In this document: positions 20,526-47,126 of the stretch, piece after piece
Numbering within the stretch: position 1 is the first letter of the stretch
Layout of the letters: the number at the start of each line of letters is the position of its first letter
Virus record (IMG/VR): IMGVR_UViG_3300042350_004528
Span: 62,001-126,000 of that record
DNA: 64,000 nucleotides
Direction: 5' to 3' (one strand)
Made by a program: the position numbers and the translations under genes
Notes under the pieces: generated by a model
What the model was told of the DNA's origin: nothing
The model's input: only the letters and a program-made list of their open reading frames with translations
Database searches by the model: none

Positions 20526-21044
20526 TTAAATACCGTTAAATTGATCTGGATCCGCTGTCACACAGCTAATTGTTCTAAAGTAACTTTTATACCCAAATTG
20601 TGTGTGTGCGTTGTCCGAATTTATTTTACCATCATCAAATACCTCAAAGTATTTTAGATTATTTTCTCTGTCCGAATAACCAACAATATCACCATAACTA
20701 ATATCAACACCCTTTTCATCCAATTGCTTGTTTAAAACAGTGAACGACAGATTGCCATATTCTTGATACCTTAATCTACCTTCGGCATATGATTTATTAT
20801 CAGCTTGTTCTAACGACAATAAAACTTTTAATTCAACTGGTGGTAAAAACCTAACCTCACGAGCCTCACTTTCACCATACACATCGTCATTATTACTATT
20901 AACCTTATCTATTCTGTACAAAACAATAGTGAAATTAGCATCCTCCTCAATAACTTCTCTAGCCATATCCAATTCAAGATCAAAATCTTTTTCGTCATAA
21001 AATCGAGATAATCTGGTTATTGGTATCCTATTTTTACGTTCCAT
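20526..21044 (-). CDS. Head closure/neck protein (gp14-like)
   Basis: IVLYRID...DVYGE...GDIV pattern of head-closure proteins; late motif upstream at 21056-21063. Confidence 0.55.
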   Translation of the reverse strand: MERKNRIPITRLSRFYDEKDFDLELDMAREVIEEDANFTIVLYRIDKVNSNNDDVYGESEAREVRFLPPVELKVLLSLEQADNKSYAEGRLRYQEYGNLSFTVLNKQLDEKGVDISYGDIVGYSDRENNLKYFEVFDDGKINSDNAHTQFGYKSYFRTISCVTADPDQFNGI

Positions 21045-21081
21045 ATTATTTTTATTATAAATAGTCTAAACAAACTCTATA

Positions 21082-21112
21082 TTGACTTTATGGAAAATAA
21101 TTACTATTTTTG
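21082..21112 (+). promoter_or_regulatory. Bacteroidota sigma-A-type promoter (TTG-N20-TATTTTTG)
   Basis: Matches TAnnTTTG with canonical spacing, 11 nt before the ATG at 21124. Confidence 0.65.
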
Positions 21113-21123
21113 TCATAAAAAGA

Positions 21124-21627
21124 ATGAGAGATCATATATTAGAATATTGTTCCGTTGATATAATGGAAGAACACATGTTTTTGGACGTTATCTTCGATAA
21201 CGCTTTACTTGGGGTCTGCTATACAATGGAAGATGGGTTTATCCCAGCTTATAATATCGATTTGGTCATCGATAAGATTGCCCAAAATGGTGATTTAACA
21301 TATCAAGAAGCCCTTAATGTTTTTAATAATGATATTTTGGATCGTCATCCAATGATATCTTTTATAAAAAAAAGTGATGAGTCCGAAGAAGAATTATCGG
21401 ATTATAATAAAGAAATGCTATTCTTACCAGATTATAACAAAAACACGCTTGTTGGTGTAAAAATACAACAAGATAGAAATGTGATTGCTGTTTATGATGA
21501 TTTTATGTGTGTTCAATCATTAATGGATGATGGTCTGACGGAAGAAGATGCTATTGAACATTTTGAGTACAACACTCGAGGTTCATATGTAGGAGAAAAC
21601 ACACCTGCGTTTTTAACAATGTTTTAA
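21124..21627 (+). CDS. Hypothetical phage protein with an internal tandem duplication
   Basis: Start moved to ATG 21124 because the promoter occupies 21082-21112. Two similar units; the second ends EDAIEHFEYNTRGSYVGENTP. Confidence 0.7.
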   Translation: MRDHILEYCSVDIMEEHMFLDVIFDNALLGVCYTMEDGFIPAYNIDLVIDKIAQNGDLTYQEALNVFNNDILDRHPMISFIKKSDESEEELSDYNKEMLFLPDYNKNTLVGVKIQQDRNVIAVYDDFMCVQSLMDDGLTEEDAIEHFEYNTRGSYVGENTPAFLTMF

Positions 21628-21629
21628 AA

Positions 21630-23411
21630 ATGAATTTACCAATAGAAAAACTAGCTCTGAATATTTTAAAAACATATGAGGGTGCTAACGATTATATACG
21701 ACAAATACAAAAAGATTTTTTCAAAAATAAATCTTTTATACCAACAAAAAATCAATCTGATTATATCATAAAATTTCATAATATTGCACCGCATAGTGTA
21801 AAAAAAGAAGTTGCGATACACAAATCTTGTAGGGAATTTGTTAAAGACCAATTAAAATTAGATTTTTTACCAGATAAAATTTATATAGATAAGTTATTAT
21901 CCAGAAAAGAAGATATGCTCCATATCTGGGGTTGTTTTGGTGGGGATTGTGGTTATTATCAAACAATATTCATTTCAAAGGAATGTATAAAAAAATTAAA
22001 AAAAGTACCAGAAATTGACTTTTCAAAATACGAAAGGGAGCCAAAACCACATCAAATAGAGGCAATAAATAAATTACTTGAAAATGAAAAATTTATTTTG
22101 GCGGATGATATGGGTCTTGGTAAAACCACATCTTCCATAATAGCCGCACTTGAAGGTGGTTTTAAAAAAATATTGGTTGTATGTCCAGCATCTTTAAAGT
22201 TAAACTGGAAAAAGGAAATAATGAATTATGATTCTGGCGATAACATTTCAATAGTTGATGGAGTCGATTTCAGAGCAAAAAAATGGACTATCGTAAACTA
22301 CGATATTTTAAAGAATTTCCATTACTTACCACAAAGGGGTGTTAAATTATCTGATTTACCCCCATCACCAATAGATTTTCATAAATTTGATTTGGTTATT
22401 GCTGACGAAGCACATTATTTAAAGAACTCAACATCAAATCGAACAAAGATTTTTAACAATTTTACATCAAAAATACAAAATAGATGGTTCTTAACTGGAA
22501 CACCAATAACAAACAAACCTGTTGATTTTTATAATTTATTATACCTATGCGAATCTCCGATTGCAATAAACTGGATGTTTTATGTTAGAAGATATTGTGC
22601 GGCAAAACAATTTAATAGAAAAGGTAGTAAACAAAAATATTGGGTAACCTCTGGCGCATCTAACTTAGACGAACTTAGGGAATACTCTGCTGATTGTATA
22701 CTGAGAAGAACTAAAAAAGATTCGATCGACTTACCACAAAAAACAATAAAACCAATATACTTACCAATAGAATTGTGTACAAACTACAATAGTTACATTG
22801 CTGAATATGAGGCGTGGGTTGAGGAAATGTTGGCTATTGGTGAAAAACCATCAGTTACCGATCACCTAACAAAACTAATAAAAGTTAGGCAACTTTTATC
22901 CCATGATAAAACAAAACACACAATTGAGTTAGCTGAAGATTTAATTGAAAACGGTCATAAAGTTATTATATTCAGTTGTTTCACGCAATCCATAAACTCA
23001 ATACATGAACATTTTGGTAAAAGTTCTGTGATAATAGATGGTTCCGTATCAAAAGAAAAAAGACAACTTGCGGTAGATAGGTTTCAATCAGACGACAAAG
23101 TAAAAGTTTTCTGCGGTAATATAGTTGCTGCTGGTGTTGGTTTAACTTTAACTGAAGGTACGATTGTTATATTCAACGACCTAGATTGGACACCAACTAA
23201 TCATGCACAAGCTGAAGATAGGGCCCATAGGATTGGACAAGTTAATGATGTTCACATTATATACCCACTATTTGATGAGACTTTAGATGTCATAATGTTC
23301 AACACATTAAGACGAAAAATGAAAATAATCAACCAGGTTATGGGAGATAATATGATTACCGATGACTTATCGGTTGGTCAAGAAGTGATTAAAGATTTAA
23401 TGAAACAATAA
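21630..23411 (+). CDS. SNF2/SWI2-family helicase (HARP/SMARCAL1-like)
   Basis: LADDMGLGKT (Walker A), IADEAH (DEAH), LTGTP, AGVGLTLT, QAEDRAHRIGQ. Confidence 0.93.
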   Translation: MNLPIEKLALNILKTYEGANDYIRQIQKDFFKNKSFIPTKNQSDYIIKFHNIAPHSVKKEVAIHKSCREFVKDQLKLDFLPDKIYIDKLLSRKEDMLHIWGCFGGDCGYYQTIFISKECIKKLKKVPEIDFSKYEREPKPHQIEAINKLLENEKFILADDMGLGKTTSSIIAALEGGFKKILVVCPASLKLNWKKEIMNYDSGDNISIVDGVDFRAKKWTIVNYDILKNFHYLPQRGVKLSDLPPSPIDFHKFDLVIADEAHYLKNSTSNRTKIFNNFTSKIQNRWFLTGTPITNKPVDFYNLLYLCESPIAINWMFYVRRYCAAKQFNRKGSKQKYWVTSGASNLDELREYSADCILRRTKKDSIDLPQKTIKPIYLPIELCTNYNSYIAEYEAWVEEMLAIGEKPSVTDHLTKLIKVRQLLSHDKTKHTIELAEDLIENGHKVIIFSCFTQSINSIHEHFGKSSVIIDGSVSKEKRQLAVDRFQSDDKVKVFCGNIVAAGVGLTLTEGTIVIFNDLDWTPTNHAQAEDRAHRIGQVNDVHIIYPLFDETLDVIMFNTLRRKMKIINQVMGDNMITDDLSVGQEVIKDLMKQ

Positions 23412-24563
23412 GAATGAGTATTTAACGTCAGCTCTTTGAGCCCCGATGTCACCCTCACCTTTTGGCGCAATCATTACATTATATTGTAGCGGTTGACCTT
23501 CTGGCGTTTTAATCAATTCATCGTAGGTTAAAATTGTTTGTGGATCCACATTATAAGTTAACCCAAGTCTACTTTTTAATATTTCAGCCCCGTTTTCTTT
23601 AGCATAAACAGGTCTACCTTTATCATCAAGTACATAATTACGTTTACTATCATCTTTTAAATAAAGATCATCAAACAATTCTTTTGGTACTGTTTCAGCT
23701 TGCTTTTTATCCTCAAGATTTTTTATTTTTGATCTTTCTCTTTTGTTAGCGTCTGTTGAAAAGTTAACAACCATATCTGGATCAGACAAATTAACAACAT
23801 CGCCCATTTTAGTATATGCGTATGATTTAACATTATAACCCTCAGCCTTAAGTTCCTTGGTTATATTTAAAGCGATTTGTAAATATTTCTTTGTAAAAAA
23901 GTCACCAGCATCATTCCATCTAAATTCAATAACAGCATCTGGGTTTTTAACTGCAACAACCTCTAATTCGTTTTTAAGTAATTTTTCAAATCTAGCTGGA
24001 TAATTAAGTAACAAATTTAATATTCTAGTTTGATTAACAAAAACATCTGGATATAAAACATAACTACCTTTTCTTGCATAACATATTGTAGCACAAGCAC
24101 CAGCGCCTGGACAAGTGTTAACAAAATAAAATTGGGAATTTTCAATATCATAAACCAAACCGCGAAGAGCTGGTATACCGATATTAACAGATATAACACC
24201 ACCATCGGTTGATTTTTTCATTTTATCGTTAACGCTAATAAGCTTATTTGGCATTGATGTTATATTCTTTATAAAAGAATCAATATCGATTTCACCAGAT
24301 GCAGTCTTTGGTATTCTTTTATTGTGTATATAAGGTTTATCTGGGGATAATTTTTCCCTATCCTTTGGTTTTTTTTCTTGGTTATCTAAAATCGTATTTA
24401 AATACTCAACCAAAGCTGGGCCCATAATACATTTTTTACTAACATCAGCAAACTCCCCTTCCCAATCAATTTCATTTAACTCTTCTTCGGTAATCATTTC
24501 ACCAGATAACATTTTCATTCTGGTAATCTCTTCAAATAATATAGCGTTTTTATATTTATCCAT
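23397..24563 (-). CDS. GP88-like protein (Cys-cluster, radical-SAM-like) with an acidic N-terminal leader
   Basis: NTCPGAGACATICYA and FRWNDAGDF...AYTK are typical of the phage gene-product-88 family. Confidence 0.7.
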   Translation of the reverse strand: MDKYKNAILFEEITRMKMLSGEMITEEELNEIDWEGEFADVSKKCIMGPALVEYLNTILDNQEKKPKDREKLSPDKPYIHNKRIPKTASGEIDIDSFIKNITSMPNKLISVNDKMKKSTDGGVISVNIGIPALRGLVYDIENSQFYFVNTCPGAGACATICYARKGSYVLYPDVFVNQTRILNLLLNYPARFEKLLKNELEVVAVKNPDAVIEFRWNDAGDFFTKKYLQIALNITKELKAEGYNVKSYAYTKMGDVVNLSDPDMVVNFSTDANKRERSKIKNLEDKKQAETVPKELFDDLYLKDDSKRNYVLDDKGRPVYAKENGAEILKSRLGLTYNVDPQTILTYDELIKTPEGQPLQYNVMIAPKGEGDIGAQRADVKYSFLLFH

Positions 24564-29633: not shown

Positions 29634-32600
29634 ATGTCTGATTATAAAATATCGTTGAGTGAAGTCGAGTCGTTTTTATTAGGTCATGATGACGAAAAAT
29701 ATATCGTAAATTTAGAGTACGATAAAGAAACGAATTTAATTTACAAGTTCAAACAACTACCTGACGGTACAAAAACGACCGAAACCGAACCGCTTAAGTC
29801 CTTTATGTGGATGAAACACCTCGGCGAGTTAAAAGAAAACCTTAATTTTTACGGTAAAAACGACCTGAATATTCAAAATGCTAGAAAAGAATACGGTATA
29901 ACCATAACTGAACTTGATCACCAAAATCACCCTAAGCTTGAGACTGGTTACCAATATTTGGTAACTTGCGATCAGGGGCATGAAAGGATGTTGCAGTTTT
30001 TTAGAAACGGAGGTCTCTATGGTGGTGTGTATGATAGACGTAATGGTATAAATGAAAACTTCTTGATTTTGAGTCCTATTGAGCAATACCTAATATCAAC
30101 AGGTAAAAGGCTTTTTAAGGGTTATGAGGACTACGATAATCTAGAAAAATTCGTATTCGACTTAGAGACAACTGGCTTGGATCCTAAAACTTCTAGAATA
30201 TTTTTAGTTGGTTGTAAGTCAAATAATGGCTTTGAGGAATTGTTTGATTGTGAAACCGATGGTGACAATGCTGACAGAAGCGAAGTTGCCGCGATAGCTA
30301 AATTTTTTGCGGTTATCGATTATTTAAAACCAACAATAATTGGCGGGTACAATAGTGCAAACTTTGACTGGGATTTTATTTTTAAAAGATGTGAGATACT
30401 TGGTATTGATATAACTAAAATCGCCAAAACACTAAAAAACGGTGAAGTTATTAATAATCGAGATGGTATATTAAAATTGGGTAATGAGATTGAAAACTAT
30501 GTCCAAACAAATATGTTTGGATATTCGATTATTGATATCATACACTCAGTTAGACGTGCACAAGCGATTGACTCTAGTATGAAATCAGCGTCATTAAAAT
30601 ACGTTTGTAAGTATAATAAAGTAGCAAAAAAGAATCGTGTTTATATTAAAGGTGATAAAATTGGCGCTTTATGGTCTAGCGATAAAAAATATTATTTTGA
30701 TGATAAGACTGGTTCTTATTTAGAGATAAAACCAAAATTTGAAAAAATGGATTATATCACAAGAGAAATTGTTCGAGATAATCCTAAAAAAATATTTGTT
30801 TTCGGTGATAATGATGAGCGTGATGGTTTTGGTGGCCAGGCTGGTCAAATGAGGGGTGAAAAAAATTCAATTGGAATACCAACAAAGAAAAAACCAACAA
30901 TGGATCCCGATGCGTTCTATTGCGATTCCGAATTTGAAGAAAATAAGAAAAAGATTAATTATGCGGTAACGCAAATTTTATCAAAAATACGAGATGGTTA
31001 TAGTGTTGTTTTTCCATCAGATGGTCTTGGTACTGGTTTAGCTGAATTACCAAAAAGAGCGCCAAAAACTTATCAGTTTTTAGTTGCAAATATTAATGCG
31101 ATTGAAAAATATATTAACAATGATTGGATTGAAGTCGATGGTAAATATATAGTTAAAAGGTATTTGATGGATGACTTATGGGAAACCATGGAAGTTGACA
31201 ACATCTATAATCAAACATCTTTTATGTTGGCTAAAATGATCCCAACTACATATCAAAGAGTGTCAACTATGGGTACCGCTGGGTTGTGGAAACTACTAAT
31301 GTTAACATGGTCTTATGAGAAAAATTTAGCAATACCAGTTTCGGACAGAAAAAGAGATTTTGTTGGTGGTCTATCAAGATTATTAAAAGTTGGGTTTTCA
31401 AAAGACCTGAGAAAAATGGACTTTAACTCACTATATCCAGCTATACAATTAGCACATGATGTGTTCCCGTCTGTCGATGTTAGTGGTGTGATGAAATCTT
31501 TCTTAAAATATTTCCACTCTGAAAGATTTAAAGCAAAGGACTTGGCTAAAAAATATGGTAAAGAGGGTAATAAACAACTTGAGTCACTCTACAAAAGAAA
31601 ACAATTACCGCTTAAAATCTTTATCAACTCGATGTTCGGTGCGCTTGGCGCCCCAAATGCGTTCCCATGGGCTGAAATGGATGTCGCTGAGGGTATAACA
31701 TGTAGAGCTAGACAGTACCTCCGCTTAATGGTTAAATTCTTTATGAAAAGGGGTTACCAACCAACTGTACTTGACACTGACGGTGTTAACTTCATGGCGC
31801 CAAGTACAGGTGAAGAATATTTTTATTATGTGGGTAAAGGTTATAATAGTGAAGTTGTTGCGGGTAAAGAATACAGAGGTGTACATGCCGTTGTTGCTGA
31901 ATTTAATGATTTATATATGAAAGGCGAGATGGCACTTGGTTTAGATGGTATGTGGCCAGCGACACTAAATTTAGCTCGTAAAAACTACGCTCTACTTGAA
32001 AATGATGGTAGTATTAGTTTAACTGGAAATACGATTAAATCTAAAAAGCTACCAATTTATATTGAAGAGTTTTTGGATAAGTCTATTGTTTTACTTTTAA
32101 ATGGTAAGGGTTATGAATTCGTCCAACTTTACTACGATTACATCGGTAAAATATGTGATAAAAAAATACCTTTGGCTAAAATCGCAACCAAAGCGAGGGT
32201 TAAAAAAACCATCGAGCAATATAGAAACAGAGGTGTTAATAAAAATGGGCAACCGTTACCAAAGCAAGCTCATATGGAATTAGCTATTTTAAATAACATA
32301 TCGGTTAGTTTGGGTGATACACTTTATTATGTAAATAACGGCACAAAAAAATCCCATGGCGATATTCAAACAACTAAAAAATGCAAACTAAAAGCAGCTG
32401 AAGTTAGATTGTATGAAATTAATAATGGTAAATCACCTGGCCCAGAGTATTATGATATAACTGAAAAAATAAATTGCTATCTTCTTGATGAAAAACAAAT
32501 GGAAGTTAACCCAGAAGCCGTTGGGGAATATAATGTTGAAAAATATGTTGCAATGTTTAATTCGAGAATCAAAGGACTTTTGGTTAATTTTGATATTAAG

Positions 32601-32840
32601 GTTAGAAACCAAATACTAATTAACAACCCAGAGGAAAAAAAGAATTGGATGGTTTCTGAACTTGAGATGGTTAATAGCCAACCAAATAAAGAATCTGATC
32701 AAGATACAATTGAAGAGTTGTTCACACCATCTGGTCTTGAAAAAGATTATTGGGGTAGATATAACTATAACCCAGATTTTTGGTTTACCGATAATACCAG
32801 CTTTACTATCCCAGGTTTAGGTCGAGAAGTACCAGTTTAA
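29634..32840 (+). CDS. polB: Family B DNA polymerase with an inserted macrodomain-like module
   Basis: ExoI FDLETTG, ExoII GYNSANFD, ExoIII YLMDD, polymerase motifs DFNSLYP, KIFINSMFG and DTDG; ~127-aa insertion at ~30735-31115. Confidence 0.95.
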   Translation: MSDYKISLSEVESFLLGHDDEKYIVNLEYDKETNLIYKFKQLPDGTKTTETEPLKSFMWMKHLGELKENLNFYGKNDLNIQNARKEYGITITELDHQNHPKLETGYQYLVTCDQGHERMLQFFRNGGLYGGVYDRRNGINENFLILSPIEQYLISTGKRLFKGYEDYDNLEKFVFDLETTGLDPKTSRIFLVGCKSNNGFEELFDCETDGDNADRSEVAAIAKFFAVIDYLKPTIIGGYNSANFDWDFIFKRCEILGIDITKIAKTLKNGEVINNRDGILKLGNEIENYVQTNMFGYSIIDIIHSVRRAQAIDSSMKSASLKYVCKYNKVAKKNRVYIKGDKIGALWSSDKKYYFDDKTGSYLEIKPKFEKMDYITREIVRDNPKKIFVFGDNDERDGFGGQAGQMRGEKNSIGIPTKKKPTMDPDAFYCDSEFEENKKKINYAVTQILSKIRDGYSVVFPSDGLGTGLAELPKRAPKTYQFLVANINAIEKYINNDWIEVDGKYIVKRYLMDDLWETMEVDNIYNQTSFMLAKMIPTTYQRVSTMGTAGLWKLLMLTWSYEKNLAIPVSDRKRDFVGGLSRLLKVGFSKDLRKMDFNSLYPAIQLAHDVFPSVDVSGVMKSFLKYFHSERFKAKDLAKKYGKEGNKQLESLYKRKQLPLKIFINSMFGALGAPNAFPWAEMDVAEGITCRARQYLRLMVKFFMKRGYQPTVLDTDGVNFMAPSTGEEYFYYVGKGYNSEVVAGKEYRGVHAVVAEFNDLYMKGEMALGLDGMWPATLNLARKNYALLENDGSISLTGNTIKSKKLPIYIEEFLDKSIVLLLNGKGYEFVQLYYDYIGKICDKKIPLAKIATKARVKKTIEQYRNRGVNKNGQPLPKQAHMELAILNNISVSLGDTLYYVNNGTKKSHGDIQTTKKCKLKAAEVRLYEINNGKSPGPEYYDITEKINCYLLDEKQMEVNPEAVGEYNVEKYVAMFNSRIKGLLVNFDIKVRNQILINNPEEKKNWMVSELEMVNSQPNKESDQDTIEELFTPSGLEKDYWGRYNYNPDFWFTDNTSFTIPGLGREVPV

Positions 32841-35671: not shown

Positions 35672-35703
35672 AAAGGGGTTAAGTGATTAACCCCTTTTTT
35701 TTT
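35672..35703 (+). terminator. Rho-independent terminator
   Basis: AAAGGGGTTAA-GTGA-TTAACCCCTTT followed by a long T-run. Confidence 0.9.
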
Positions 35704-35728
35704 GCGTAATATTTCTTATTATTGTTAT

Positions 35729-36124
35729 ATGAATGAAATAGTTTGGGTAAACGGAACTTTTGACATCTTACATAACGGTCATTTTAGATTAATTAACTAC
35801 GCATCGTCATTAGGTAAACTAATAATCGGAATTGATAGTGATGCCAGAGTGAAAAAAATAAAAGGTGATAATAGGCCATACCATAACCAATTTGAAAGGC
35901 ACTATAATTTAATATCGATAAAGGGGGTTTATAACGTATTAATCTTTGATAGTGATGAAGAGTTAAAAGAATTAATAAAAATGAACTCACCAGACTACTT
36001 TGTTATTGGTTCTGATTATAAAGATAAAAAAATAATTGGCGCTGAATACGCGAAAGAAATGATCTTCTTTAACAGAATAAATTTCTCAACAACAGAAATC
36101 TTAAAATTATGGGACATAAAATAA
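35729..36124 (+). CDS. Nucleotidyltransferase, RfaE/HldE domain II / TagD-like
   Basis: [14 protein letters not shown] (HxGH) and GIDSD..VK..KG..RP; start moved to ATG 35729. Confidence 0.85.
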
Positions 36125-36510
36125 AACCAAAAGTCATCAATGCAAAAGAATGCGAAAGTTGTAATATACCAAAAGGCTGGGGGCACGAAATTATTTTTGA
36201 AAATAATGAACTATATTGTGGTAAATTACTTTGTTTTAAAGCTGGGGCTAAGTTTTCTATGCATTACCACATGATAAAAGATGAAGCGTGGTATGTTAAA
36301 GAAGGTAAATTCATTTACAGGTGGATTGACACGGATAATGCCGATATTCATGAAATTGAATTACGAGAGGGCGACAGTGTTAGGCAATTACCAGGTCAAC
36401 CGCACCAATTAGAAGCGGTTACCGATGGTATCGTTTTTGAGGTTTCAACACAACATTTTGATTATGATTCCTATCGCGTATTAAAAGGTGATTCAAATAA
36501 ACCCCAATAA
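36109..36510 (+). CDS. Cupin, sugar-phosphate isomerase-like
   Basis: PKGWGHE...CGKLL...SMHYH..KDE.WYV...H cupin metal-binding motifs. Confidence 0.8.
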
Positions 36511-36524
36511 AATTAATAAAATAC

Positions 36525-36555
36525 TTGTTTTTTAGCGTATTTTTTTTTATTATTG
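36525..36555 (+). promoter_or_regulatory. Variant host-type promoter TTG-N20-TATTATTG
   Basis: 20-nt spacing, 22 nt before the ATG at 36578. Confidence 0.45.
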
Positions 36556-36577
36556 GGTAAAACCCAGTTATAAATAT

Positions 36578-37804
36578 ATGGCAAAAATTAAAATTTTAGT
36601 AGCCCCAGGTGATAAAGCGGGTTCTGGTAAATTTAGATGCGTTGATCCGCATGTAAACCTACAAAATAATTTTTCTGACGAATTTTTTATCGATATTGAT
36701 TATGCGATAGATTTTAATAATGTGGAGTATTTAAAAAAGTATGATGTTATTTTTATACACAGAATACCGCAGCATAAACACAAAGAAGCTGTAAACATAA
36801 TTAAAAATTTAAAGAAAATTGGATTAAAGGTAATCATTGATACAGATGACCACTGGAATTTAGATCCATCACATGGTTTATATCATTCAGCTAAAAGGGA
36901 AAATATCTCAGGTATTTTAGTTGAGTGTATTAAAATGGCCGACATGGTTACAGTACCAACTACAATTTTAGCTGATGAAGTTAAAAAATACAATAAAAAT
37001 GTTTTTGTTTTACCAAACGCAATTGACCCAAATGAAGAACAATTTAAACCTAAAAAAACAGAATCTAATTTAATTAGATTTGGTTGGTTAGGTGGTTCTT
37101 CCCACATAAAAGATATTGAGTTATTAAAAGGTTTAGGTAATACGCAAAAATCTTTTGATAAAAAAACACAATTTGTTTTATGTGGATTTGATACCCGAGG
37201 TACTGTTCAAATGTTGGATCCAAACACAGGTGAGATAAAACAAAGACCAATGCAACCACAAGAAACAACCTGGTTTATGTATGAGTTGTTTTTAACCGAC
37301 AGTTATAAAAACTTAGAGGGTGATGCTGATTATTTAAAATACTTAGTTTCGTTTGAAGATGATCCAAATTACAGTGTGTTAAATAAACCTTATCGTAGAA
37401 TTTGGACAAAACCCATTAGTCAATATGCGACTGGGTATAATCATTTTGACATTGCGTTGGCCCCACTTAACGACTCTCAATTTAATAAGTATAAATCTCA
37501 ACTTAAAGTGATCGAAGCTGGATTTCATAAAAAAGCTTTGATTGCTCAAAACTACGGGCCATATACGATTGATTTGATTGGCGCTATTGATAAAGGTGGT
37601 GCCTGGAACCCAAAAGGTAATTGCTTACTTGTTGAAACTTCTAAAAACCATAAACAATGGACTAAAAATGCTAAAAAATTAATTGACAATCCAGATTTAA
37701 TCACCGAACTTGGTGAAAAATTATATGAAACGGTTAAAGATAAATACGATTTAAATAACGTTACAAAATTAAGATCAGAACTATACAAAAATTTAATAAA
37801 ATGA
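36578..37804 (+). CDS. Glycosyltransferase, GT-B fold (GT4-like)
   Basis: IIDTDDHW, FGWLGGSSH, DIALAPL..SQFNKYKSQLKVIEAG. Confidence 0.85.
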   Translation: MAKIKILVAPGDKAGSGKFRCVDPHVNLQNNFSDEFFIDIDYAIDFNNVEYLKKYDVIFIHRIPQHKHKEAVNIIKNLKKIGLKVIIDTDDHWNLDPSHGLYHSAKRENISGILVECIKMADMVTVPTTILADEVKKYNKNVFVLPNAIDPNEEQFKPKKTESNLIRFGWLGGSSHIKDIELLKGLGNTQKSFDKKTQFVLCGFDTRGTVQMLDPNTGEIKQRPMQPQETTWFMYELFLTDSYKNLEGDADYLKYLVSFEDDPNYSVLNKPYRRIWTKPISQYATGYNHFDIALAPLNDSQFNKYKSQLKVIEAGFHKKALIAQNYGPYTIDLIGAIDKGGAWNPKGNCLLVETSKNHKQWTKNAKKLIDNPDLITELGEKLYETVKDKYDLNNVTKLRSELYKNLIK

Positions 37805-38373
37805 TACCAGCAGAAACAATTGAAAAAAACAAAAAAAGTTATTATAGCGCAGCTAAAGGCTATAAAGTTTGTGAATTAGAATTAGTTGACAAATTAGCTG
37901 ATATGGGTTTATTCGAAACACCCGCATCGACCATGTTAAGCCTACACAACGCATTTCCAGGTGGTTTAGTTGATCACTTGTTAAGAGTTACATCATATGC
38001 TGTTAAACTAAACGATATGTTACCAGAATCACTTAAACAACCTAAGGAAAGTGTTGTTAGGGTGAGCCTATTACACTCCATTGGTAAAATTGGGTTATAT
38101 TCATTATGTAAGAGTGAATGGCATATTAAAAACCAAGGTAAAATGTATGAATTTAACGAAGATCTAACATCAATGACAATTGGTGAAAGAAGCATTTATT
38201 ACATTATGTCCAATGGATTTGGTGGTATTTTAAGTGATATTGAATACCAAGCGATATTAAATCACGATAAGGGGTCATCGGATAAAATGTCTGAATGGCA
38301 CACATCATCTTTAGGTGAAACTTTAAAGATGGCAATAAAATTAGCTATAATGGAAGAAAAGACAAAGAAATAA
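37801..38373 (+). CDS. HD-superfamily-like protein (YhaM-like, HS instead of HD)
   Basis: HNAFPGGLVDH...LLHSIGK...AILNHD. Confidence 0.65.
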   Translation: MIPAETIEKNKKSYYSAAKGYKVCELELVDKLADMGLFETPASTMLSLHNAFPGGLVDHLLRVTSYAVKLNDMLPESLKQPKESVVRVSLLHSIGKIGLYSLCKSEWHIKNQGKMYEFNEDLTSMTIGERSIYYIMSNGFGGILSDIEYQAILNHDKGSSDKMSEWHTSSLGETLKMAIKLAIMEEKTKK

Positions 38374-38374
38374 T

Positions 38375-38980
38375 ATGAGCGGAAATAATAAAGAAAAGAC
38401 CGAATTAGAAAGATTGATGAATTTAAACGTAAATGATTTTCTAACCGATGAGGAAAAAAGTCAAATGAGCGACATTTTCAATCAAGTTGGTATGGAAGAT
38501 TGGATTTACGAGCCTGGCGATAGTTCGATGAAGTTAAAGATTAAAATCATTAATAATTCAACAAATCCAGACCCAACTTATCAAAAAATTGGCGATAGTG
38601 GGTTTGATTTTATGGCTAATTTACCTGAAGGTGAAATGATAGTGGTGGGGCCACTTAAACGAGCCCTTATACCAACTGGGTTACACTTTCAAATACCTAT
38701 TGGGTTTGAATTACAGGTCAGACCAAGGAGCGGCTTGGCGCTTAAAAATGGCATTACTGTTTTAAACACACCTGGAACTGTTGATTCTGGTTATAGAGGT
38801 GAAATAAAAATTATTTTATACAACACCGATGAAGCCCCATTTGTGGTTAGAAATGGTGACAGAATTGCGCAAGGTGTAATAGCACCAGTGCAATTCACAA
38901 AAACAACGAAATTTATACGAGTGAATAATTTAGACGAGTCTGACAGGGGAACTGGAGGATTTGGTTCAACTGGAGTTTAA
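38375..38980 (+). CDS. dut: Trimeric dUTPase
   Basis: SGFD, RPRSGLA, GTVDSGYRGEI, RIAQ, RGTGGFGSTG: all five motifs. Confidence 0.97.
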   Translation: MSGNNKEKTELERLMNLNVNDFLTDEEKSQMSDIFNQVGMEDWIYEPGDSSMKLKIKIINNSTNPDPTYQKIGDSGFDFMANLPEGEMIVVGPLKRALIPTGLHFQIPIGFELQVRPRSGLALKNGITVLNTPGTVDSGYRGEIKIILYNTDEAPFVVRNGDRIAQGVIAPVQFTKTTKFIRVNNLDESDRGTGGFGSTGV

Positions 38981-39262
38981 ATGAGAGAATATTTTAAAGC
39001 ACAGTTAGCTTATTACCCACAAATAACGGAAGAAATTTTAGATAAAATTGAATTTAAAACCGTTTGGTCTGGAAAAAGAATACAACCTGGTGATAAAGTT
39101 GTATATGCGTATGTTTATTTATTAAATACTGATGACCTTAAAGCAATCTCTTTTTTAGAAAGAGAATTACATGAAATAAGTGCTAAATTCAAATTGATCA
39201 GAGTAGAAGAAGACATTATGCCAATTTTGGCGTTTAAAGAAGATACAAAAAAAAGAGATTAA
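38981..39262 (+). CDS. Hypothetical protein
   Basis: 93-aa ORF abutting both neighbours. Confidence 0.6.
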   Translation: MREYFKAQLAYYPQITEEILDKIEFKTVWSGKRIQPGDKVVYAYVYLLNTDDLKAISFLERELHEISAKFKLIRVEEDIMPILAFKEDTKKRD

Positions 39263-39263
39263 A

Positions 39264-39935
39264 ATGGATACTTTTTCAATAACAATTGCTTTCTCAACGA
39301 GAAAAATAAATCAAGAGTATGTTGAACATGTTAAAAAATCATGTGCATGCCCAGATTTAGAGTTGTTGGTTTATGAAAACAATGGTGATAAAAGTTTAAC
39401 TGAAATTTATAATGAAGTTTTAAAAACAGCAAAAAATGATATCATTGTTTTCTGTCATGATGATTTAATTTTTGATACACCTTATTGGGGTAGAAAATTA
39501 GTTAAACATTTCAAAAGAAACCCAGATTACGGTATAATTGGAATTGCTGGTACCAACAATTTAATAAATGGTAGGTGGTGGTCGTTAAGGGAATCAATGC
39601 ACGGCATTGTCAATCATACGGATGGTAATAGAAAATGGACAAGTATGTTCTCTCAACCACAAGGCAATAAAATAAAACAAATGGTTATACTTGATGGTTT
39701 GTTTTTTGCTGTTGATAAGACAAAAATTAAACATGGTTTTGATGAGGATTTTAATGGGTTTCATTTTTACGACTTATCATTTTGCATACCAAATCATTTA
39801 GATGGTGTTAAGATTGGTGTTATAACGGATATAATGATCACACACTTATCTGTTGGTATGACAAACCAAAAATGGGAAGATAATAAAAATTTATTGGAAA
39901 AAAAATATGCGGATAAGTTTCCGATGAGAATATGA
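39264..39935 (+). CDS. Glycosyltransferase family 2-like protein
   Basis: IYN...AKNDIIVFCHDD, LDGLFFA, FHFYDLSFC. Confidence 0.8.
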   Translation: MDTFSITIAFSTRKINQEYVEHVKKSCACPDLELLVYENNGDKSLTEIYNEVLKTAKNDIIVFCHDDLIFDTPYWGRKLVKHFKRNPDYGIIGIAGTNNLINGRWWSLRESMHGIVNHTDGNRKWTSMFSQPQGNKIKQMVILDGLFFAVDKTKIKHGFDEDFNGFHFYDLSFCIPNHLDGVKIGVITDIMITHLSVGMTNQKWEDNKNLLEKKYADKFPMRI

Positions 39936-40594
39936 AAAATATTAGTGGTTTAAAAAATATCCATGTGGGTGAAGATATCTACATTTTAGCATCTGGTAAA
40001 TCTGTTGATTTTTTTGATGAAGATTTTTTTGATGGTAAAATACTTATCGGTGTTAACCAAGCGTATAAATTTACTTGGTGTGATTACCTGGTTAGAAAAG
40101 AAGTTAAATTTATTAAACAGAGTATAGAAACAGATTCCGTTGTTATTGTTTCTGAGTACGATAGTGGTAATTTAAATTCTGGTGAACAAAAGTTAAATAC
40201 AAACAAAATTGATCACCCTAATTTATATTATTTTGAACACTTGGATAATCAACATGCAAGGCTTGACACATCTGTTTTTGGTACAGATAAAATTGTCGTT
40301 AGTTTCTCAACTATTACATCAGCCATACACATTGCAGCCTACATGGGCGCTAAAAACATTATTTTAATTGGTCATGATTGTGGTACGATTGATGGCGAAA
40401 TGACGTTTAAAGGGTATTATGATTCCATTAAAGATACACCATGGGTGAGCTGGGATCAGTATAAATCTTGGTTAAAAATAATTGAAGGGCAAACGATAGA
40501 AGTTAAAAAACAAGTAAAAAAACACTATGGTGCTAATGTTGTATCAATGCTACCGTTTGTTTCACTGAACCTAGAAAATCATTTATATTTGTGA
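39932..40594 (+). CDS. DUF115/Maf-like (sialyltransferase-fold) protein
   Basis: GEDIYILASGKS...IGVNQA...STITSAIHIAAYMGAKNIILIGHD. Confidence 0.7.
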   Translation: MKNISGLKNIHVGEDIYILASGKSVDFFDEDFFDGKILIGVNQAYKFTWCDYLVRKEVKFIKQSIETDSVVIVSEYDSGNLNSGEQKLNTNKIDHPNLYYFEHLDNQHARLDTSVFGTDKIVVSFSTITSAIHIAAYMGAKNIILIGHDCGTIDGEMTFKGYYDSIKDTPWVSWDQYKSWLKIIEGQTIEVKKQVKKHYGANVVSMLPFVSLNLENHLYL

Positions 40595-41223
40595 TAAAAT
40601 ACATTATACCAGCAAGACGAAACTCAAAAGGGTTCCCATTTAAAAATAGAAAATTAATAAATTATACGTTAGATAATTTACCAAAAAACGTATATGACGA
40701 TGTTATTTTAACTACCGATGATGAAAAGTTATTGGAAATTGGTTTAGAATATGGTATAAAATGTATTAATAGAAATCCAAGTTTAGCTTTAGATAAAACT
40801 TCAACTAAAGAAGTTATGGATGACCTAAAGTTTCAGGGTATTATTACTAACACAGACATTGTTGTTATGTTATATTTAACATATCCGCAAAGAAATTGGT
40901 TAGATATAACTAACGCTTTACAGTTTTTTGATAATAAAAATGCAAAAAGCCTTTTGTGTAAAAAAGAAATAACAACAACCCACCCATATTTATATTTACT
41001 TGAAGTTGGTGATTTTAAGGGTAAACAATTAATCCCCCACAATCTATACAGAAGGCAAGATTATCCAAAAGTTTTTGAAATATCTCACTTTATATCGATT
41101 TTTAAAGTCAGTGAACTCAAAAATTTAAATAATAATCTTTATAATAACGACACCGTTTTTTATCCAATTGATGATATAATTGATGTTGACACTGATAAAG
41201 ATTTAGAAAGGTTTTTAGAATAA
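40591..41223 (+). CDS. neuA: Acylneuraminate (CMP-nonulosonate) cytidylyltransferase
   Basis: IIPARRNSKGFPFKN, LTTDD, LYLTYPQR, IDVDTDKD; GTG start. Confidence 0.88.
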   Translation: MIKYIIPARRNSKGFPFKNRKLINYTLDNLPKNVYDDVILTTDDEKLLEIGLEYGIKCINRNPSLALDKTSTKEVMDDLKFQGIITNTDIVVMLYLTYPQRNWLDITNALQFFDNKNAKSLLCKKEITTTHPYLYLLEVGDFKGKQLIPHNLYRRQDYPKVFEISHFISIFKVSELKNLNNNLYNNDTVFYPIDDIIDVDTDKDLERFLE

Positions 41224-42374
41224 TGGGTATTTTTATAAAAAATAAAACAAAAAGGGTACAAAAAGATGACACAAAACAACCAGTGTTAACTAATACTGCA
41301 ACTAATAAATCTTTAATAGGTGAAGAGGTTGTCGTTGCTGAAAAAAAAGCAATAAAAAAAGGATTTGGGGATAAAAAAATTGTAAACAAAGAACCAGTAA
41401 AGGCCACAATTAATTCTGTGGCGGTTGGTAAAGAGGAAAAAAAGTCCGTGTTGTTATTTGAAAACAACGAAAAAAATGAACCGACCACAAATTCATTAAT
41501 TAATAAAATTAATAAATCTTCAGGTAGAAATTCAATTTTTGACAAAGTTGTTGCCCCAGAAATTAAAAATTCAAATGTAGCTAAATCAAATGACAAAGTT
41601 GTTAACGACATTTATGATAAAGCTAGAAAAAATATTAGTTTTATAAAAAATAAAAATAATAAGTACTATGATTTTGTTTTCACTAAAGGGTACATAAATG
41701 AAAAAGATATTAAACATGTTAACACTGAACTAGATAAACAATTAAATAATTTAAAAATAAATCCGTCAACAATGGATTTATACTTTTTTAAATCGTTTAT
41801 AAAAGATAAAACAATCGCTCTTATAGCTAACTCGTCTGATTTATTAAATAAAAAACTTGGTGCGGAAATAGATTCTCATGACATTGTAGTTAGATTTAAT
41901 TCATATAAAATATTAAAAGAGGATACTGGGGAAAAATTAACTATACATGTTAGCATTTATTTACAAAATGAAAATTTAAATAATTTTGCACCTATTAGAT
42001 TTATCCTTTCGGGTAATAAAATAAACTGGGCTAAAAAAATATTAACATTAAATAAGTTTAACCAATCTACAATATTAAAGTATAATCACCACTCAACATT
42101 ACCAGGTAATTTTAGAGACGATTCGCCAACCACAACGGGATTCGCCACCTTAATTTTACTACTTAAAATTGGTGGTTTTCAAAAAATTAATATGTTTGGT
42201 TTTGATTTTTATCAAAACGGTAATGATAGTTTATTTAGAACGGACGTTGGTATGGAATCCCCAATATCTACCGTTCATGATTATTTCTTCGAAAAAGAAT
42301 TTATGATGGAATATTCATATGAATATGACGATAAAAAAAATATAATTACTTTTTATGATTATAGCACATTTTAA
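41223..42374 (+). CDS. GT29-like sialyltransferase with a Lys-rich N-terminal extension
   Basis: Sialylmotif L (IALIANS..LL....G.EID.HD.VVRFN), motif S (PTTG...MFGFD) and VS (HxxxxE). Confidence 0.75.
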   Translation: MGIFIKNKTKRVQKDDTKQPVLTNTATNKSLIGEEVVVAEKKAIKKGFGDKKIVNKEPVKATINSVAVGKEEKKSVLLFENNEKNEPTTNSLINKINKSSGRNSIFDKVVAPEIKNSNVAKSNDKVVNDIYDKARKNISFIKNKNNKYYDFVFTKGYINEKDIKHVNTELDKQLNNLKINPSTMDLYFFKSFIKDKTIALIANSSDLLNKKLGAEIDSHDIVVRFNSYKILKEDTGEKLTIHVSIYLQNENLNNFAPIRFILSGNKINWAKKILTLNKFNQSTILKYNHHSTLPGNFRDDSPTTTGFATLILLLKIGGFQKINMFGFDFYQNGNDSLFRTDVGMESPISTVHDYFFEKEFMMEYSYEYDDKKNIITFYDYSTF

Positions 42375-43203
42375 AGAAACGCCAATAGCACATGCACCAG
42401 AAGCGATTAGTGATGTTATAAATAAATATACAGATCATAAATCGTATGTTTTTGGCTACGGTTACCCGAATAAAAAATTAATACCAAAAACCGATATACT
42501 CCATTTACATAATAAGGATAGAAATTATAATTTTAATAAAAAAGTAATACAGTATCATAGTGAACCTTTTAGGGTAACATTGGATGTAAAAACAAAAAAA
42601 TTAGTAATAGCTCAGTACCATGCAACCTTACCAGAATATAATAATTGTACCGTTGTTAGAAACCCAATTGACATTTATGATGTAAAATTTTTACCAAAAT
42701 ACCAAAATAAAAAAATAAGAATTGGTTATTCTCCGTCAACAGTCAGACCACTATCAATTTGGGCAGATAAAGGATATACTGAAACATATCCCATTTTACA
42801 AAAAATAAAATCTAAATACGGAAACTCCGTTGAAATTGATATAATTGTAAATGTTTCATTAGACGAATGTTTAAAAAGAAAATCTCTATGTAATATTTTT
42901 ATTGATGAAGTAAAAACAATATCATATCATAGATCTGGGTTAGAATCGTTATCAATGGGTATTCCAACAATATGTTCAATTGGCCCATCCGTTGAAAAAC
43001 TTTTATTAAATTCTTCTGGTGCGCCAAATAGCCCGTTTATTAATGTAAATCATAATCAGTTAGAAAAAAAACTAATTGAATTAATAAATTTGGGGGTGGG
43101 TAATTTGTTGGAAATTGGTTACAATAATAGACTTTGGATGGAAAAATATTGGTCACCAGATACTATCGCAAACGAATATATTGAAATATATAAAAAAATA
43201 TAA
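42355..43203 (+). CDS. Glycosyltransferase, GT-B-like
   Basis: IRIGYSPST...KG...IFIDE...GLESLSMGIP. Confidence 0.7.
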   Translation: MIIAHFKETPIAHAPEAISDVINKYTDHKSYVFGYGYPNKKLIPKTDILHLHNKDRNYNFNKKVIQYHSEPFRVTLDVKTKKLVIAQYHATLPEYNNCTVVRNPIDIYDVKFLPKYQNKKIRIGYSPSTVRPLSIWADKGYTETYPILQKIKSKYGNSVEIDIIVNVSLDECLKRKSLCNIFIDEVKTISYHRSGLESLSMGIPTICSIGPSVEKLLLNSSGAPNSPFINVNHNQLEKKLIELINLGVGNLLEIGYNNRLWMEKYWSPDTIANEYIEIYKKI

Positions 43204-43204
43204 A

Positions 43205-43876
43205 ATGAAAAAATATTCAATTATAATACCAACGATGTGGATGTCTAGTCATTTATTTAAAATGTTAGACTTTTATGAGGAAAATGAATTAATACAAGAG
43301 GTTATAATTATAGATAATGCGCCAGAAAAGGGGCAACCAATACCAAAACAATTAAGTAAGTTAAAACTACATACTAAGGGTAAAAACATATATGTTAACC
43401 CAGCCTGGAATTTTGGTGTTTCATTAGCAATTAGTGATTATATTATAATTGCTAATGATGATATATTATTTAATAAAAAAGATTTTGATGAGTTACTAAA
43501 TAAGTCTTTTGAGTTTTTAAACGAAAACACCATAATTGGCCCATCAATGTATTGTTTTAAACAAAATCCCGAGAATTATAGTTTGCGATATAATGGTTTA
43601 AAAATCGAAAAGCTTAATGTAGGATTTACTTATGGTTTTGGTACATTTATGATAATGAAAAAAAACTCTTATACAATAATACCAGATGATATTTTAATAT
43701 TTCATGGAGACGTCATTCAACACAGAACAAATGATGTGTTTTTATTTAGTGGTATTGAGATAGATACACCGATGAGCGTAACACTTAAAAGTGATCCACA
43801 AATACATAATTTAGCTAAATTAGACCACGCCAAATCATTAAAGTATGATGTCAAAAAATTAATTAAATTTAAATAA
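43205..43876 (+). CDS. Glycosyltransferase family 2
   Basis: YSIIIPT, IIIDN, NPAWNFG, IANDD; start moved to ATG 43205. Confidence 0.8.
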   Translation: MKKYSIIIPTMWMSSHLFKMLDFYEENELIQEVIIIDNAPEKGQPIPKQLSKLKLHTKGKNIYVNPAWNFGVSLAISDYIIIANDDILFNKKDFDELLNKSFEFLNENTIIGPSMYCFKQNPENYSLRYNGLKIEKLNVGFTYGFGTFMIMKKNSYTIIPDDILIFHGDVIQHRTNDVFLFSGIEIDTPMSVTLKSDPQIHNLAKLDHAKSLKYDVKKLIKFK

Positions 43877-44521
43877 ATGGCTAACGGAATTTACAAAATA
43901 ACAGAAGAATTTGAAAAAGCGTTAAGTGATTACACAGGCGCACCATATGTTGTTACATTAGATAACCAATCAAACGGTTTATTTTTATCATTATACTACG
44001 AAAATAATATTAAAAAAAGTATAACAACCCCAAAAATTACAATACCATCAAGAACATACCCATCGGTACCGTGTGAAATAATACACGCGGGCTTAAAAGT
44101 TGATTTTTATCCTATTGAGGGGACAAAATTAAAAGGCGCTTATGAATTAAAGGGTAGTAATGTCTGGGATTCCGCTTTAAGGTTTACCGCAAATATGTAT
44201 TTACCATCAACACATATGTGCATATCTTTTACGGGCCCATATAAACATTTTAAATTAAGTAAAGGAGGTGCTATTTTAACTGATAGCCATGAAGCTTATT
44301 TATGGTTTAAGAGGGCTAGATATAGTGGTAGGAGGGAATGCTCTTATCATGACGATCATTTTGATATGTTGGGTTGGAATTTTTATATGATGCCAGAATT
44401 AGCGGCACGTGGGTTGTTGTTAATGAATCAATTTTACAACATCGATGGCACAAAAAAAGAAAACGCGGATTTAGAATTACCATATCCAGATTTATCAAAG
44501 TTTGATATTTATAAACAATGA
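43877..44521 (+). CDS. DegT/DnrJ/EryC1/StrS-type sugar aminotransferase (short form)
   Basis: FEKALSDYTGAPY...SNGLFL, WDSA, SFTGPYKH...GGAIL, GWNFYM; only 214 aa. Confidence 0.8.
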   Translation: MANGIYKITEEFEKALSDYTGAPYVVTLDNQSNGLFLSLYYENNIKKSITTPKITIPSRTYPSVPCEIIHAGLKVDFYPIEGTKLKGAYELKGSNVWDSALRFTANMYLPSTHMCISFTGPYKHFKLSKGGAILTDSHEAYLWFKRARYSGRRECSYHDDHFDMLGWNFYMMPELAARGLLLMNQFYNIDGTKKENADLELPYPDLSKFDIYKQ

Positions 44522-45240
44522 AACACATAATTGTCTTTTTGGCTTATGAAAATTTTGATATTATTAAAAAATCATTTAATTCGTTAAAAAATTGCGATTC
44601 GGATTTTTTTATTATTGAAAATAACTCTAAAAATTCAAATATCATAAAAGAATTTTTTATAAATGAAAATTTAGTCGGGTATATTCAATTTATAGAAAAT
44701 GCTGCGGCAAATGCTGTAAATATTTTTATTAAAAAATATTATAACTTATTATCCCAATATGATTATGTGACAATAACTGATGGTGATTTATTTCTATATG
44801 ACGCAACAGAAACATTTGGTGAAATAATTTCATCGTTTAATCATAATAATTGTTATGTTTGTGGCGTTGCCTTATATAAAGGTAATTATTATGAAAATAC
44901 AACCAATAGAATTATTGGTACCGAATATTATATTGAACATATGTTAAGTAAGTCGGAACATAAATTAGAGGCAATAAAAGGTAGAACAGGTAATCATTTA
45001 TTGACCTTTAATAAAGAAAGTCTACACGTTATTAAAGACATCCATTATATTGATTCAAATATTTTTAAAAAAATAAAAGAGCTGGGTGGATCTTGTTATA
45101 GAACAACAAAAAATTTGGCCTATCATTTAACTTGGGATGTATATTTTGATGGTAATCCATATTATGAGAATAAAAAAAATAATTTAAAAGAAATCTGGTC
45201 ACAATCTGATTTTGATTTTAAATATAATGTTATTATATGA
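44518..45240 (+). CDS. Putative GT-A fold glycosyltransferase
   Basis: IIENNS, YVTITDGD, HLTWD; glycan-island context. Confidence 0.5.
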   Translation: MKHIIVFLAYENFDIIKKSFNSLKNCDSDFFIIENNSKNSNIIKEFFINENLVGYIQFIENAAANAVNIFIKKYYNLLSQYDYVTITDGDLFLYDATETFGEIISSFNHNNCYVCGVALYKGNYYENTTNRIIGTEYYIEHMLSKSEHKLEAIKGRTGNHLLTFNKESLHVIKDIHYIDSNIFKKIKELGGSCYRTTKNLAYHLTWDVYFDGNPYYENKKNNLKEIWSQSDFDFKYNVII

Positions 45241-45824: not shown

Positions 45825-45825
45825 T

Positions 45826-46440: not shown

Positions 46441-46441
46441 T

Positions 46442-47122: not shown

Positions 47123-47126
47123 CTAA

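Follow-up and report, generated by a model that had tools for sequence, protein, structure and literature searches.

DarT ADP-ribosylates phage DNA, and separate factors that counter it have been described (PMC11825919; PMC11543638): T4-like phages carry NADAR-type orphan antitoxins against it (PMC11825919), NADAR being a family of DNA-guanine de-ADP-ribosylases (PMC11543638), and chimalliviruses have a separate DarG2-like protein (PMC13309987). In addition, mutations in the family B DNA polymerase (PolB) let phages escape DarT, as stated by PMC11348598 in a passage that cites LeRoux 2022. Polymerase changes and separate erasers are the known ways of escaping DarTG-type defence; a domain built into the replicase would be a third route, coupled to the replication fork. 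Here we analyse a stretch of 64,000 nucleotides (positions 62,001 to 126,000 of IMG/VR record IMGVR_UViG_3300042350_004528; hereafter the window) from an uncultivated T4-like myovirus, in which the PolB gene carries a copy of the Pfam domain DUF7831 inserted in its proofreading exonuclease domain. A first-pass annotation of the window, whose account of DarT and of phage escape from it agrees with the papers cited above, had taken this insert for a macrodomain-like module that might read or remove ADP-ribose on DNA.

Beyond DarTG, a viral network devoted to NAD+ and ADP-ribose derivatives has been outlined that comprises the SLOG, Macro, NADAR, Nudix and DUF4326 domains, and in which SLOG is sporadically fused to helix-turn-helix (HTH), 3′-5′ exonuclease, superfamily 1 (SF1) helicase and kinase domains (PMC9503650, PMC7824862). 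One DprA/Smf-like SLOG protein, ORF83, counters type III Avs (bioRxiv 10.1101/2025.06.06.658234). Leading regions rich in single-stranded DNA-binding protein (SSB) genes are anti-defence islands (PMC11541004), and giant 'polyvalent' proteins enter together with the DNA (PMC5512222). DUF7831 is widespread, with about 2100 representative clusters, and entirely uncharacterised. A literature search found no paper on DUF7831, PF25176, PHROG 2072 or the polymerase fusion, in line with the first-pass statement that no such fusion had been described; databases do, however, already record the fusion as a Pfam architecture, in dozens of proteins from metagenomes. Because of its steady company (SSB, a ShosA-like SLOG protein, DUF4326, NADAR and NAD+ salvage genes), DUF7831 is a promising candidate for a novel anti-defence function. 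The reading that we tentatively favour, with a probability of about 0.45, is that the insert serves counter-defence from its place on the replisome, by binding a ligand or by catalysis.

The insert and the polymerase that carries it

Residues 372-485 of the polymerase match Pfam DUF7831 (PF25176) with an E-value of 4e-43 and 146.5 bits over model positions 4-117 of 118, the gathering cut-off of the family being 27 bits. The second library match for the insert is PHROG 2072, whose function is unknown. This is the only copy of DUF7831 in the window. It is enclosed by the segment at 30735-31115 (residues 368-494) that the first-pass annotation had set apart as extra sequence between the second and third exonuclease (Exo) motifs, and the string quoted there is indeed present. 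The insert and 45 stand-alone homologues have 21 invariant columns in common, grouped in four motifs (FGDN; G-x-GGQA; R...N..G-x-PTK..P; P-x-DG-x-GTG..L), and the window copy carries 21 of the 21. Exo III starts about 13 residues past the last helix of the insert. The gene and its motifs, with positions in amino acids (aa), are as follows.

29634..32840, plus strand: family B DNA polymerase gene, 1068 aa, archaeal-type fold (open reading frame (ORF), Pfam and PDB matches, model)
30156..30176, plus strand: Exo I, FDLETTG, aa 175-181, with D176/E178 (invariant columns in the alignments of relatives)
30342..30374, plus strand: Exo II, GGYNSANFDWD, aa 237-247, with D245 (alignments; aligns to the Pfu Exo II region)
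30747..31088, plus strand: DUF7831 domain within the exonuclease domain, Pfam envelope aa 372-485 (Pfam, absence in 36 relatives, models)
30801..30812, plus strand: FGDN motif, aa 390-393, at the C-terminal end of strand 2 (invariant in 46 diverse members; model)
30825..30842, plus strand: G-F-GGQA, aa 398-403, leading into helix 2 (G41, G44, Q45 and A46 invariant; helix 44-49 of the domain model)
30852..30887, plus strand: R..(E)..N..G-I-PTK, aa 407-418, strand 3 and its C-terminal end (R50, N54, G57, T60 and K61 invariant)
31014..31037, plus strand: P-S-DG-L-GTG, aa 461-468, between strand 4 and helix 4 (P104, G107, G109, T110 and G111 invariant)
31158..31187, plus strand: Exo III, RYLMDDLWET, aa 509-518, with Y510/D514 (alignments, full-length model)
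31419..31439, plus strand: polymerase motif A, DFNSLYP, aa 596-602 (D596 and Y601 invariant)
31599..31640, plus strand: polymerase motif B, KQLPLKIFINSMFG, aa 656-669, including KIFINSMFG (K661, N665 and G669 invariant)
31767..31784, plus strand: polymerase motif C, LDTDGV, aa 712-717 (D714 and D716 invariant)

The host protein belongs to the family B polymerases by motifs and by fold. Exo I-III and polymerase motifs A-C are all present and invariant across its relatives, Pfam DNA_pol_B_exo1 and DNA_pol_B both match the ORF, and its PDB sequence matches are the Pfu, KOD, 9N and Tgo polymerases. A full-length AlphaFold2 model (mean predicted local distance difference test score (pLDDT) 88.9, predicted template modelling score (pTM) 0.78) retrieved the archaeal 9N, KOD and Tgo enzymes with Foldseek, at E ~1e-29 and a target-normalised template modelling (TM) score of about 0.7. 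Since the Exo and polymerase motifs are intact, the enzyme should polymerise and proofread; judged from motifs and model, it should be an active, archaeal-type family B replicase with DUF7831 spliced into its proofreading domain. Among GenBank phages there was no DNA match, and the nearest PolB, which lacks the insert, is 25% identical.

Relatives of the polymerase were gathered by searching a collection of 5.8 billion proteins. About 80 polymerase clusters in it share the DUF7831 insert, at 47-87% identity; close relatives without the insert measure about 920-970 aa, and in the alignment these shorter polymerases are gapped cleanly at exactly the DUF7831 position. The spacing between the RVY and RYLxDD sequences is 173-175 aa with the insert, compared with 57-58 aa in 36 relatives without it, and the insertion therefore comprises about 116 aa. 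This bears out the first-pass view of a discrete insertion between Exo II and Exo III. When 118 related polymerases were scored, 63 had all or nearly all of the motifs, 36 had no insert, and the remaining 19 kept an insert of similar length in which all four motifs were lost together. Decay forms a graded series; in one example, FVFGDN becomes FVYDEN or FVYSEN, GGQA becomes GQQS or GEQS, GIPTKK becomes AIFTKK and DGLGTG becomes DVPGNG, and the invariant residues of P-S-DG-L-GTG are substituted in the decayed lineages; the most decayed inserts are beyond recognition by the DUF7831 hidden Markov model. One relative of 1392 aa (P0030) contains an intein (Pfam Intein_splicing, LAGLIDADG_3) as well as a motif-decayed insert.

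Among 61 motif-intact polymerases, invariant columns make up 17% of the insert, 16% of the exonuclease domain and 21% of the polymerase domain. Wherever its motifs are kept, the insert is under purifying selection comparable to that on the catalytic domains. Trees were computed from polymerase alignments stripped of the insert columns (FastTree, 118 rows; IQ-TREE, 44 rows with two phage PolB outgroups). On them the absence of the insert required two changes, each with a motif-intact sister, and the decayed state at least six to nine. Very long outgroup branches leave the root uncertain, but polymerases with the insert are found on either side of it. Read most simply, these trees imply that the insert was gained once, long ago, was cleanly lost twice and was inactivated repeatedly. 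The 36 relatives without the insert indicate that it is dispensable for polymerisation, and, together with the joint loss of the motifs on a retained scaffold in 19 others, that the motifs behave as one functional site that polymerisation does not need. Intact, motif-dead and insert-less polymerases also constitute a natural series of ready-made experimental controls.

DUF7831 in other phages and mobile elements

A HMMER search of 1.84 billion representative proteins found DUF7831 in 2093, many of about 130 aa and many others of 1.5-6.8 thousand aa; in GenBank it occurs in 102 phage records, annotated as a 'hypothetical protein'. The first-pass annotation had rightly recognised a family usually found as stand-alone phage and bacterial genes. 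Its range takes in phages and giant viruses as well as conjugative elements and giant multidomain proteins. The following fusions were found.

P0163, P0214 and P0149: DUF7831 with a cpYpsA SLOG domain
P0255: DUF7831 with DUF4326
P0134: DUF7831 with an AAA_33 kinase, UvrB_inter and MuF
P0128 and P0253: DUF7831 with sigma-70 regions 3/4
P0200: DUF7831 with a RanBP zinc finger
P0169: DUF7831 with NADAR and an SF1 helicase (NADAR at E 6e-6, below the Pfam cut-off, 27 versus 35.1 bits)
P0168: DUF7831 with DUF488-N3a
A 4908-aa protein: DUF7831 with DUF3991, MutL_C and DUF2958
P0238: DUF7831 with a virion-protein PHROG

A cpYpsA-type GGQ(T/S)G module is present in seven of the fusion proteins, and the partners as a whole closely parallel the published list of SLOG partners.

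Around stand-alone copies in Acidobacteriota elements and in Leptolyngbya, the gene order is YAcAr SLOG, SSB, DUF7831, with or without DUF4326, a protein of about 500-590 aa, a second SSB, RNase H and MobL relaxase. In two of these loci the YAcAr/DUF2493 SLOG gene (L004:4949-5326, L008:5111-5455), which lies two genes upstream of DUF7831, is matched by the PADLOC models for ShosA and for the PsyrA antitoxin, and resembles an orphan antitoxin-like gene within a cassette of the leading-region type. When 80 DUF4326 loci were inspected, DUF7831 was found directly upstream in 12 of them, and YAcAr in 17, the latter from diverse phyla. One element carries DUF7831 near an orphan DNA methylase and SSB. 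On one phage contig (L014:1536-5399) CTP_transf_like, Nudix, NAMPT, RNA ligase and DUF7831 genes directly follow one another in the same direction and the last two ORFs overlap by 11 bases, an arrangement that we take to resemble the phage NAD+ reconstitution pathway of Osterman and colleagues. The same contig carries a GP88 gene, as does the phage of the window. The conserved protein of 507-587 aa that follows DUF7831 (and DUF4326) in the cassettes (L004:7291-8814, L005:7156-8814, L013:5522-7285) had no match in Pfam, NCBIfam or PADLOC.

DUF7831 recurs in giant multidomain proteins and beside SSB and relaxase genes, and in this it belongs to the polyvalent and leading-region counter-defence repertoire, which is a class defined by context and not by homology. 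All in all, these data show that the family sits in mobile-element counter-defence and NAD/ADP-ribose contexts, mostly beside proteins that handle nucleic acids. Through the NADAR, SLOG, DUF4326 and NAD+ salvage fusions and neighbours, a tie to an ADP-ribose-related function is possible.

Predicted fold and competing explanations

The isolated domain was modelled with AlphaFold2 from a 46-sequence alignment (pLDDT 90.6, pTM 0.83). The model runs strand-helix-strand-helix-strand-long helix-strand-helix-helix, that is, four strands and five helices. The full-length model shows these elements again at the corresponding positions of the insert (pLDDT 82-93), followed directly by a strand (498-502) and by the Exo III helix (503-525). 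DUF7831 is thus predicted to be a compact four-stranded α/β module, in the model of which the invariant residues sit at strand C-terminal ends and helix N-termini. Foldseek comparison of the domain model with 350,542 PDB chains gave no significant match (best E 0.09, TM ≤0.41). About half of the top 50 matches were dual-specificity or tyrosine phosphatases, at a probability of at most 0.33 and a TM of at most 0.35, and the insert contains no CX5R phosphatase motif. A fold search of BFVD, a set of predicted viral structures, returned other DUF7831 proteins only, from Tupanvirus, Hyperionvirus, Yasminevirus, Caulobacter and Rhizobium phages and three large proteins of crAss-like phages; the latter (A0A7M1RV35, A0A7M1RTM7 and A0A7M1RU68 from cr131_1, cr130_1 and cr272_1) are 1278-1451 aa long, with a region that resembles the DUF7831 model in structure at 18-22% identity. 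Neither NCBIfam nor PADLOC has a model of DUF7831. Two other candidate relationships were rejected: an SGNH/GDSL hydrolase, an idea that arose from 'FGDN', gave a lone weak match (E 0.23) in one of 46 members, with neither a Ser nucleophile nor a DxxH block, and homology to DUF4326 had hhalign probabilities of 0.56% against a single sequence and 0.08% against an 81-sequence profile.

The macrodomain interpretation, in which the insert would read or erase ADP-ribose on DNA as DarG does, started from an alignment of glycine-rich loops that are superficially alike. It would accord with the fact that DarT targets single-stranded DNA and that PolB mutations give escape (LeRoux 2022 as cited in the passage of PMC11348598), and with the fusion of DUF7831 to NADAR and a helicase in P0169. 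The homology that it requires was not borne out by any of the approaches used. Pfam Macro matched none of 46 family members at E≤10, and phmmer and profile searches of the PDB with the insert returned only chance-level triosephosphate isomerase matches, though macrodomain structures are abundant there. A macro fold is a three-layer α/β/α arrangement with a six- to seven-stranded mixed sheet, compared with four strands in our model, and no macrodomain was present among the 50 Foldseek matches listed. We consequently reject macrodomain homology and regard this explanation as barely tenable; because the homology failed, the motif line-up that had been noted is a resemblance between glycine-rich loops. 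What stands of the first-pass interpretation is a discrete, independently folding module just before Exo III, and what falls is its identity as a macrodomain.

How the module might work is suggested by the placement of its motifs. Strand C-terminal ends and helix N-termini are the usual geometry of a pocket for a nucleotide or another phosphorylated ligand, and the invariant motifs may form such a pocket, for a phosphorylated ribose or nucleotide. We propose that DUF7831 is an accessory module drawn from the counter-defence repertoire of phages and of conjugative and mobilisable elements, and that the polymerase insert would bind or process a ribose-phosphate or nucleotide-type ligand, most plausibly one derived from NAD+ or ADP-ribose, either free or on nucleic acid. 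Tethered to the replisome, the insert would work in cis wherever primer ends and single-stranded DNA lie open. Its target at the fork might be a nucleotide-type adduct or blocked end on single-stranded DNA, or else a defence-derived nucleotide that it senses or degrades. A narrower version, to which we give little credence, is that DUF7831 represents an uncharacterised fold, neither macro nor NADAR, that removes or neutralises nucleotide adducts on single-stranded DNA, for example those of the DarT type, inside the replicase. On this narrower reading, the fork would repair or tolerate defence-inflicted marks as it encounters them.

Several points weigh against the counter-defence reading. By sequence, profile or fold, no homology of DUF7831 to a characterised enzyme or ligand-binding family was found, and to propose catalysis or a ligand is guesswork, based on how the motifs are placed and on the company that the domain keeps. 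Across the annotated part of the window (20-64 kb) there was no other recognisable NAD or ADP-ribose gene, and the phage neighbourhoods of stand-alone DUF7831 consist mostly of uninformative hypothetical genes. The DUF7831-DUF4326 pairing represents few independent events, because all 12 cases among the 80 loci belong to one Acidobacteriota element lineage. Finally, repeated decay of the motifs on a retained scaffold could mean that it is the scaffold, rather than the pocket, that matters to the polymerase.

This last observation leads to the explanation that the insert is a non-catalytic docking or structural module, which binds a replisome partner (SSB, clamp or helicase) or single-stranded DNA and whose motifs are an interaction surface. 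The 19 polymerases that keep a scaffold of about 116 aa after full motif loss suggest a structural role, SSB genes repeatedly adjoin DUF7831, and its fusion partners are mostly proteins that handle nucleic acids. However, invariant Gly, Asp, Asn, Arg, Thr and Lys residues at strand ends and helix N-termini, conserved across very diverse contexts (stand-alone copies, giant proteins and giant viruses), are more typical of a small-ligand pocket than of an interface for one specific partner, and 36 relatives work without the insert; we judge a docking or structural role to be unlikely. The neighbouring site, which binds the primer 3′ end, raises another option, a nucleotide- or end-processing enzyme unrelated to ADP-ribose that would, for example, clean blocked 3′ ends (of the 3′-phosphate type) or process the excised or modified deoxynucleoside monophosphates that the exonuclease releases. 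The fusion to a PNK-like AAA_33 kinase, the overlap of a DUF7831 ORF with the end of the RNA ligase gene in one phage operon, the dUTPase/dCTP-deaminase-like gene and many sugar-nucleotide genes near the polymerase, and the weak, non-significant top Foldseek matches to phosphatases and nucleotide kinases are all compatible with it. It is nevertheless unlikely, given that the comparisons gave the insert no significant match to a phosphatase, nucleotidase or glycosidase and that the conjugative elements and giant viruses that carry DUF7831 have no obvious nucleotide-modification pathway in common.

A further possibility is that DUF7831 is a divergent, miniaturised SLOG domain of the YpsA/LOG kind, which would regulate the polymerase in response to NAD+- or ADP-ribose-derived signals, as in the viral SLOG fusions of Iyer et al. 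Its GGQ...GIP segment resembles GGQTG...GIP of cpYpsA, and its P.DG.GTG..EL motif may be likened to what we take to be the LOG motif, PGGxGTxxE. The fusion partners (sigma HTH, SF1 helicase, kinase and, in the polymerase, the PolB exonuclease domain) parallel the list in PMC9503650. Profile-profile comparison with hhalign, on the other hand, assigned a probability of 0.1% against a profile of 120 YAcAr sequences and of 0.4% against seven cpYpsA segments, the latter a comparison of low power. The DUF7831 model also lacks the five-stranded Rossmannoid fold of LOG, DprA and YpsA, and none of these structures was among the 50 Foldseek matches listed, compared with E ~1e-7 for the LOG, DprA and YpsA structures retrieved by the genuine SLOG protein that counters Avs (10.1101/2025.06.06.658234). 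That a true SLOG domain often adjoins DUF7831 suggests a partner rather than a copy. SLOG homology thus received no support, and a SLOG-type sensor appears improbable. Our confidence estimates for these explanations were made separately, and some of the narrower readings overlap with the general counter-defence reading.

The phage and comparison with known systems

The T4-like character of the phage is evident from its sheath, gp13-like neck, T4-type portal, large terminase, SNF2 helicase and PhoH genes. Its GC (guanine plus cytosine) content is about 31%. Contigs that carry this polymerase reach about 300 kb, and some of those with the insert-bearing polymerase clusters reach up to 359 kb. 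On the 3′ side of the polymerase, Pfam matches mark a long run of sugar-nucleotide and glycosylation genes (35702-47972, plus strand), with cytidylyltransferase-like, cupin, dUTPase/dCTP-deaminase-like, three family-2 glycosyltransferase, MptE-like, CTP_transf_3 (CMP-sugar synthetase-like), family-29 sialyltransferase-type glycosyltransferase, DegT-type aminotransferase, PglD-like acetyltransferase, methyltransferase and NeuB genes, which from their annotation make up a predicted nonulosonic-acid-type pathway in a phage. Two very large ORFs on the minus strand (3173-10630, 2485 aa; 10647-13445, 932 aa), presumably for tail or fibre proteins, are located upstream of the sheath gene. At about 21000-24000 the GC skew changes sign with a minimum of the cumulative skew, and gene orientation turns from predominantly minus to predominantly plus strand; this is probably a boundary between transcription units.

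Within its own family, DUF7831/PHROG 2072, the insert of the window is a full-length, high-scoring member with every invariant residue, which differs from the otherwise stand-alone copies in being embedded in a polymerase. DarG and orphan DarG-like antitoxins, such as the DarG2-like protein of chimalliviruses (PMC13309987), would have the same proposed role, that of shielding replicating DNA from a nucleotide adduct inflicted by defence, and their macrodomain also has glycine-rich loops. Nevertheless, the fold of DarG differs from that of DUF7831, with which it has no similarity in sequence, profile or structure, and the DarG examples are separate proteins rather than polymerase inserts. The NADAR de-ADP-ribosylases, which serve as DarT1 antitoxins (PMC11825919, PMC11543638), occupy a mobile-element counter-defence milieu common to DUF7831 and are joined to it in P0169, but NADAR is a different domain.

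SLOG and DUF7831 are both small α/β domains with glycine-rich loops, and they have neighbourhoods and fusion partners in common; the SLOG core, however, has five strands compared with four in our model, and the two match neither by profile nor by fold. DUF4326, of the rhodanese-phosphatase clade and predicted to process phosphates derived from ADP-ribose (PMC9503650, PMC7824862), adjoins or is fused to DUF7831 and is spread in the same way over phages, giant viruses and mobile elements. Its profile is unrelated, and its Cys and His motifs are absent from DUF7831.

Modules inside replicases have precedents of their own, among them the uracil read-ahead pocket of archaeal PolBs, the TPR insertions of phi29 polymerase, the thioredoxin-binding loop of T7 polymerase, and inteins. 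The archaeal PolBs with the uracil pocket are the closest structural relatives of the window polymerase and provide a precedent for a lesion sensor within a replicase. Unlike DUF7831, none of these replicase modules is a domain that moves independently and is shared with anti-defence cassettes of conjugative elements.

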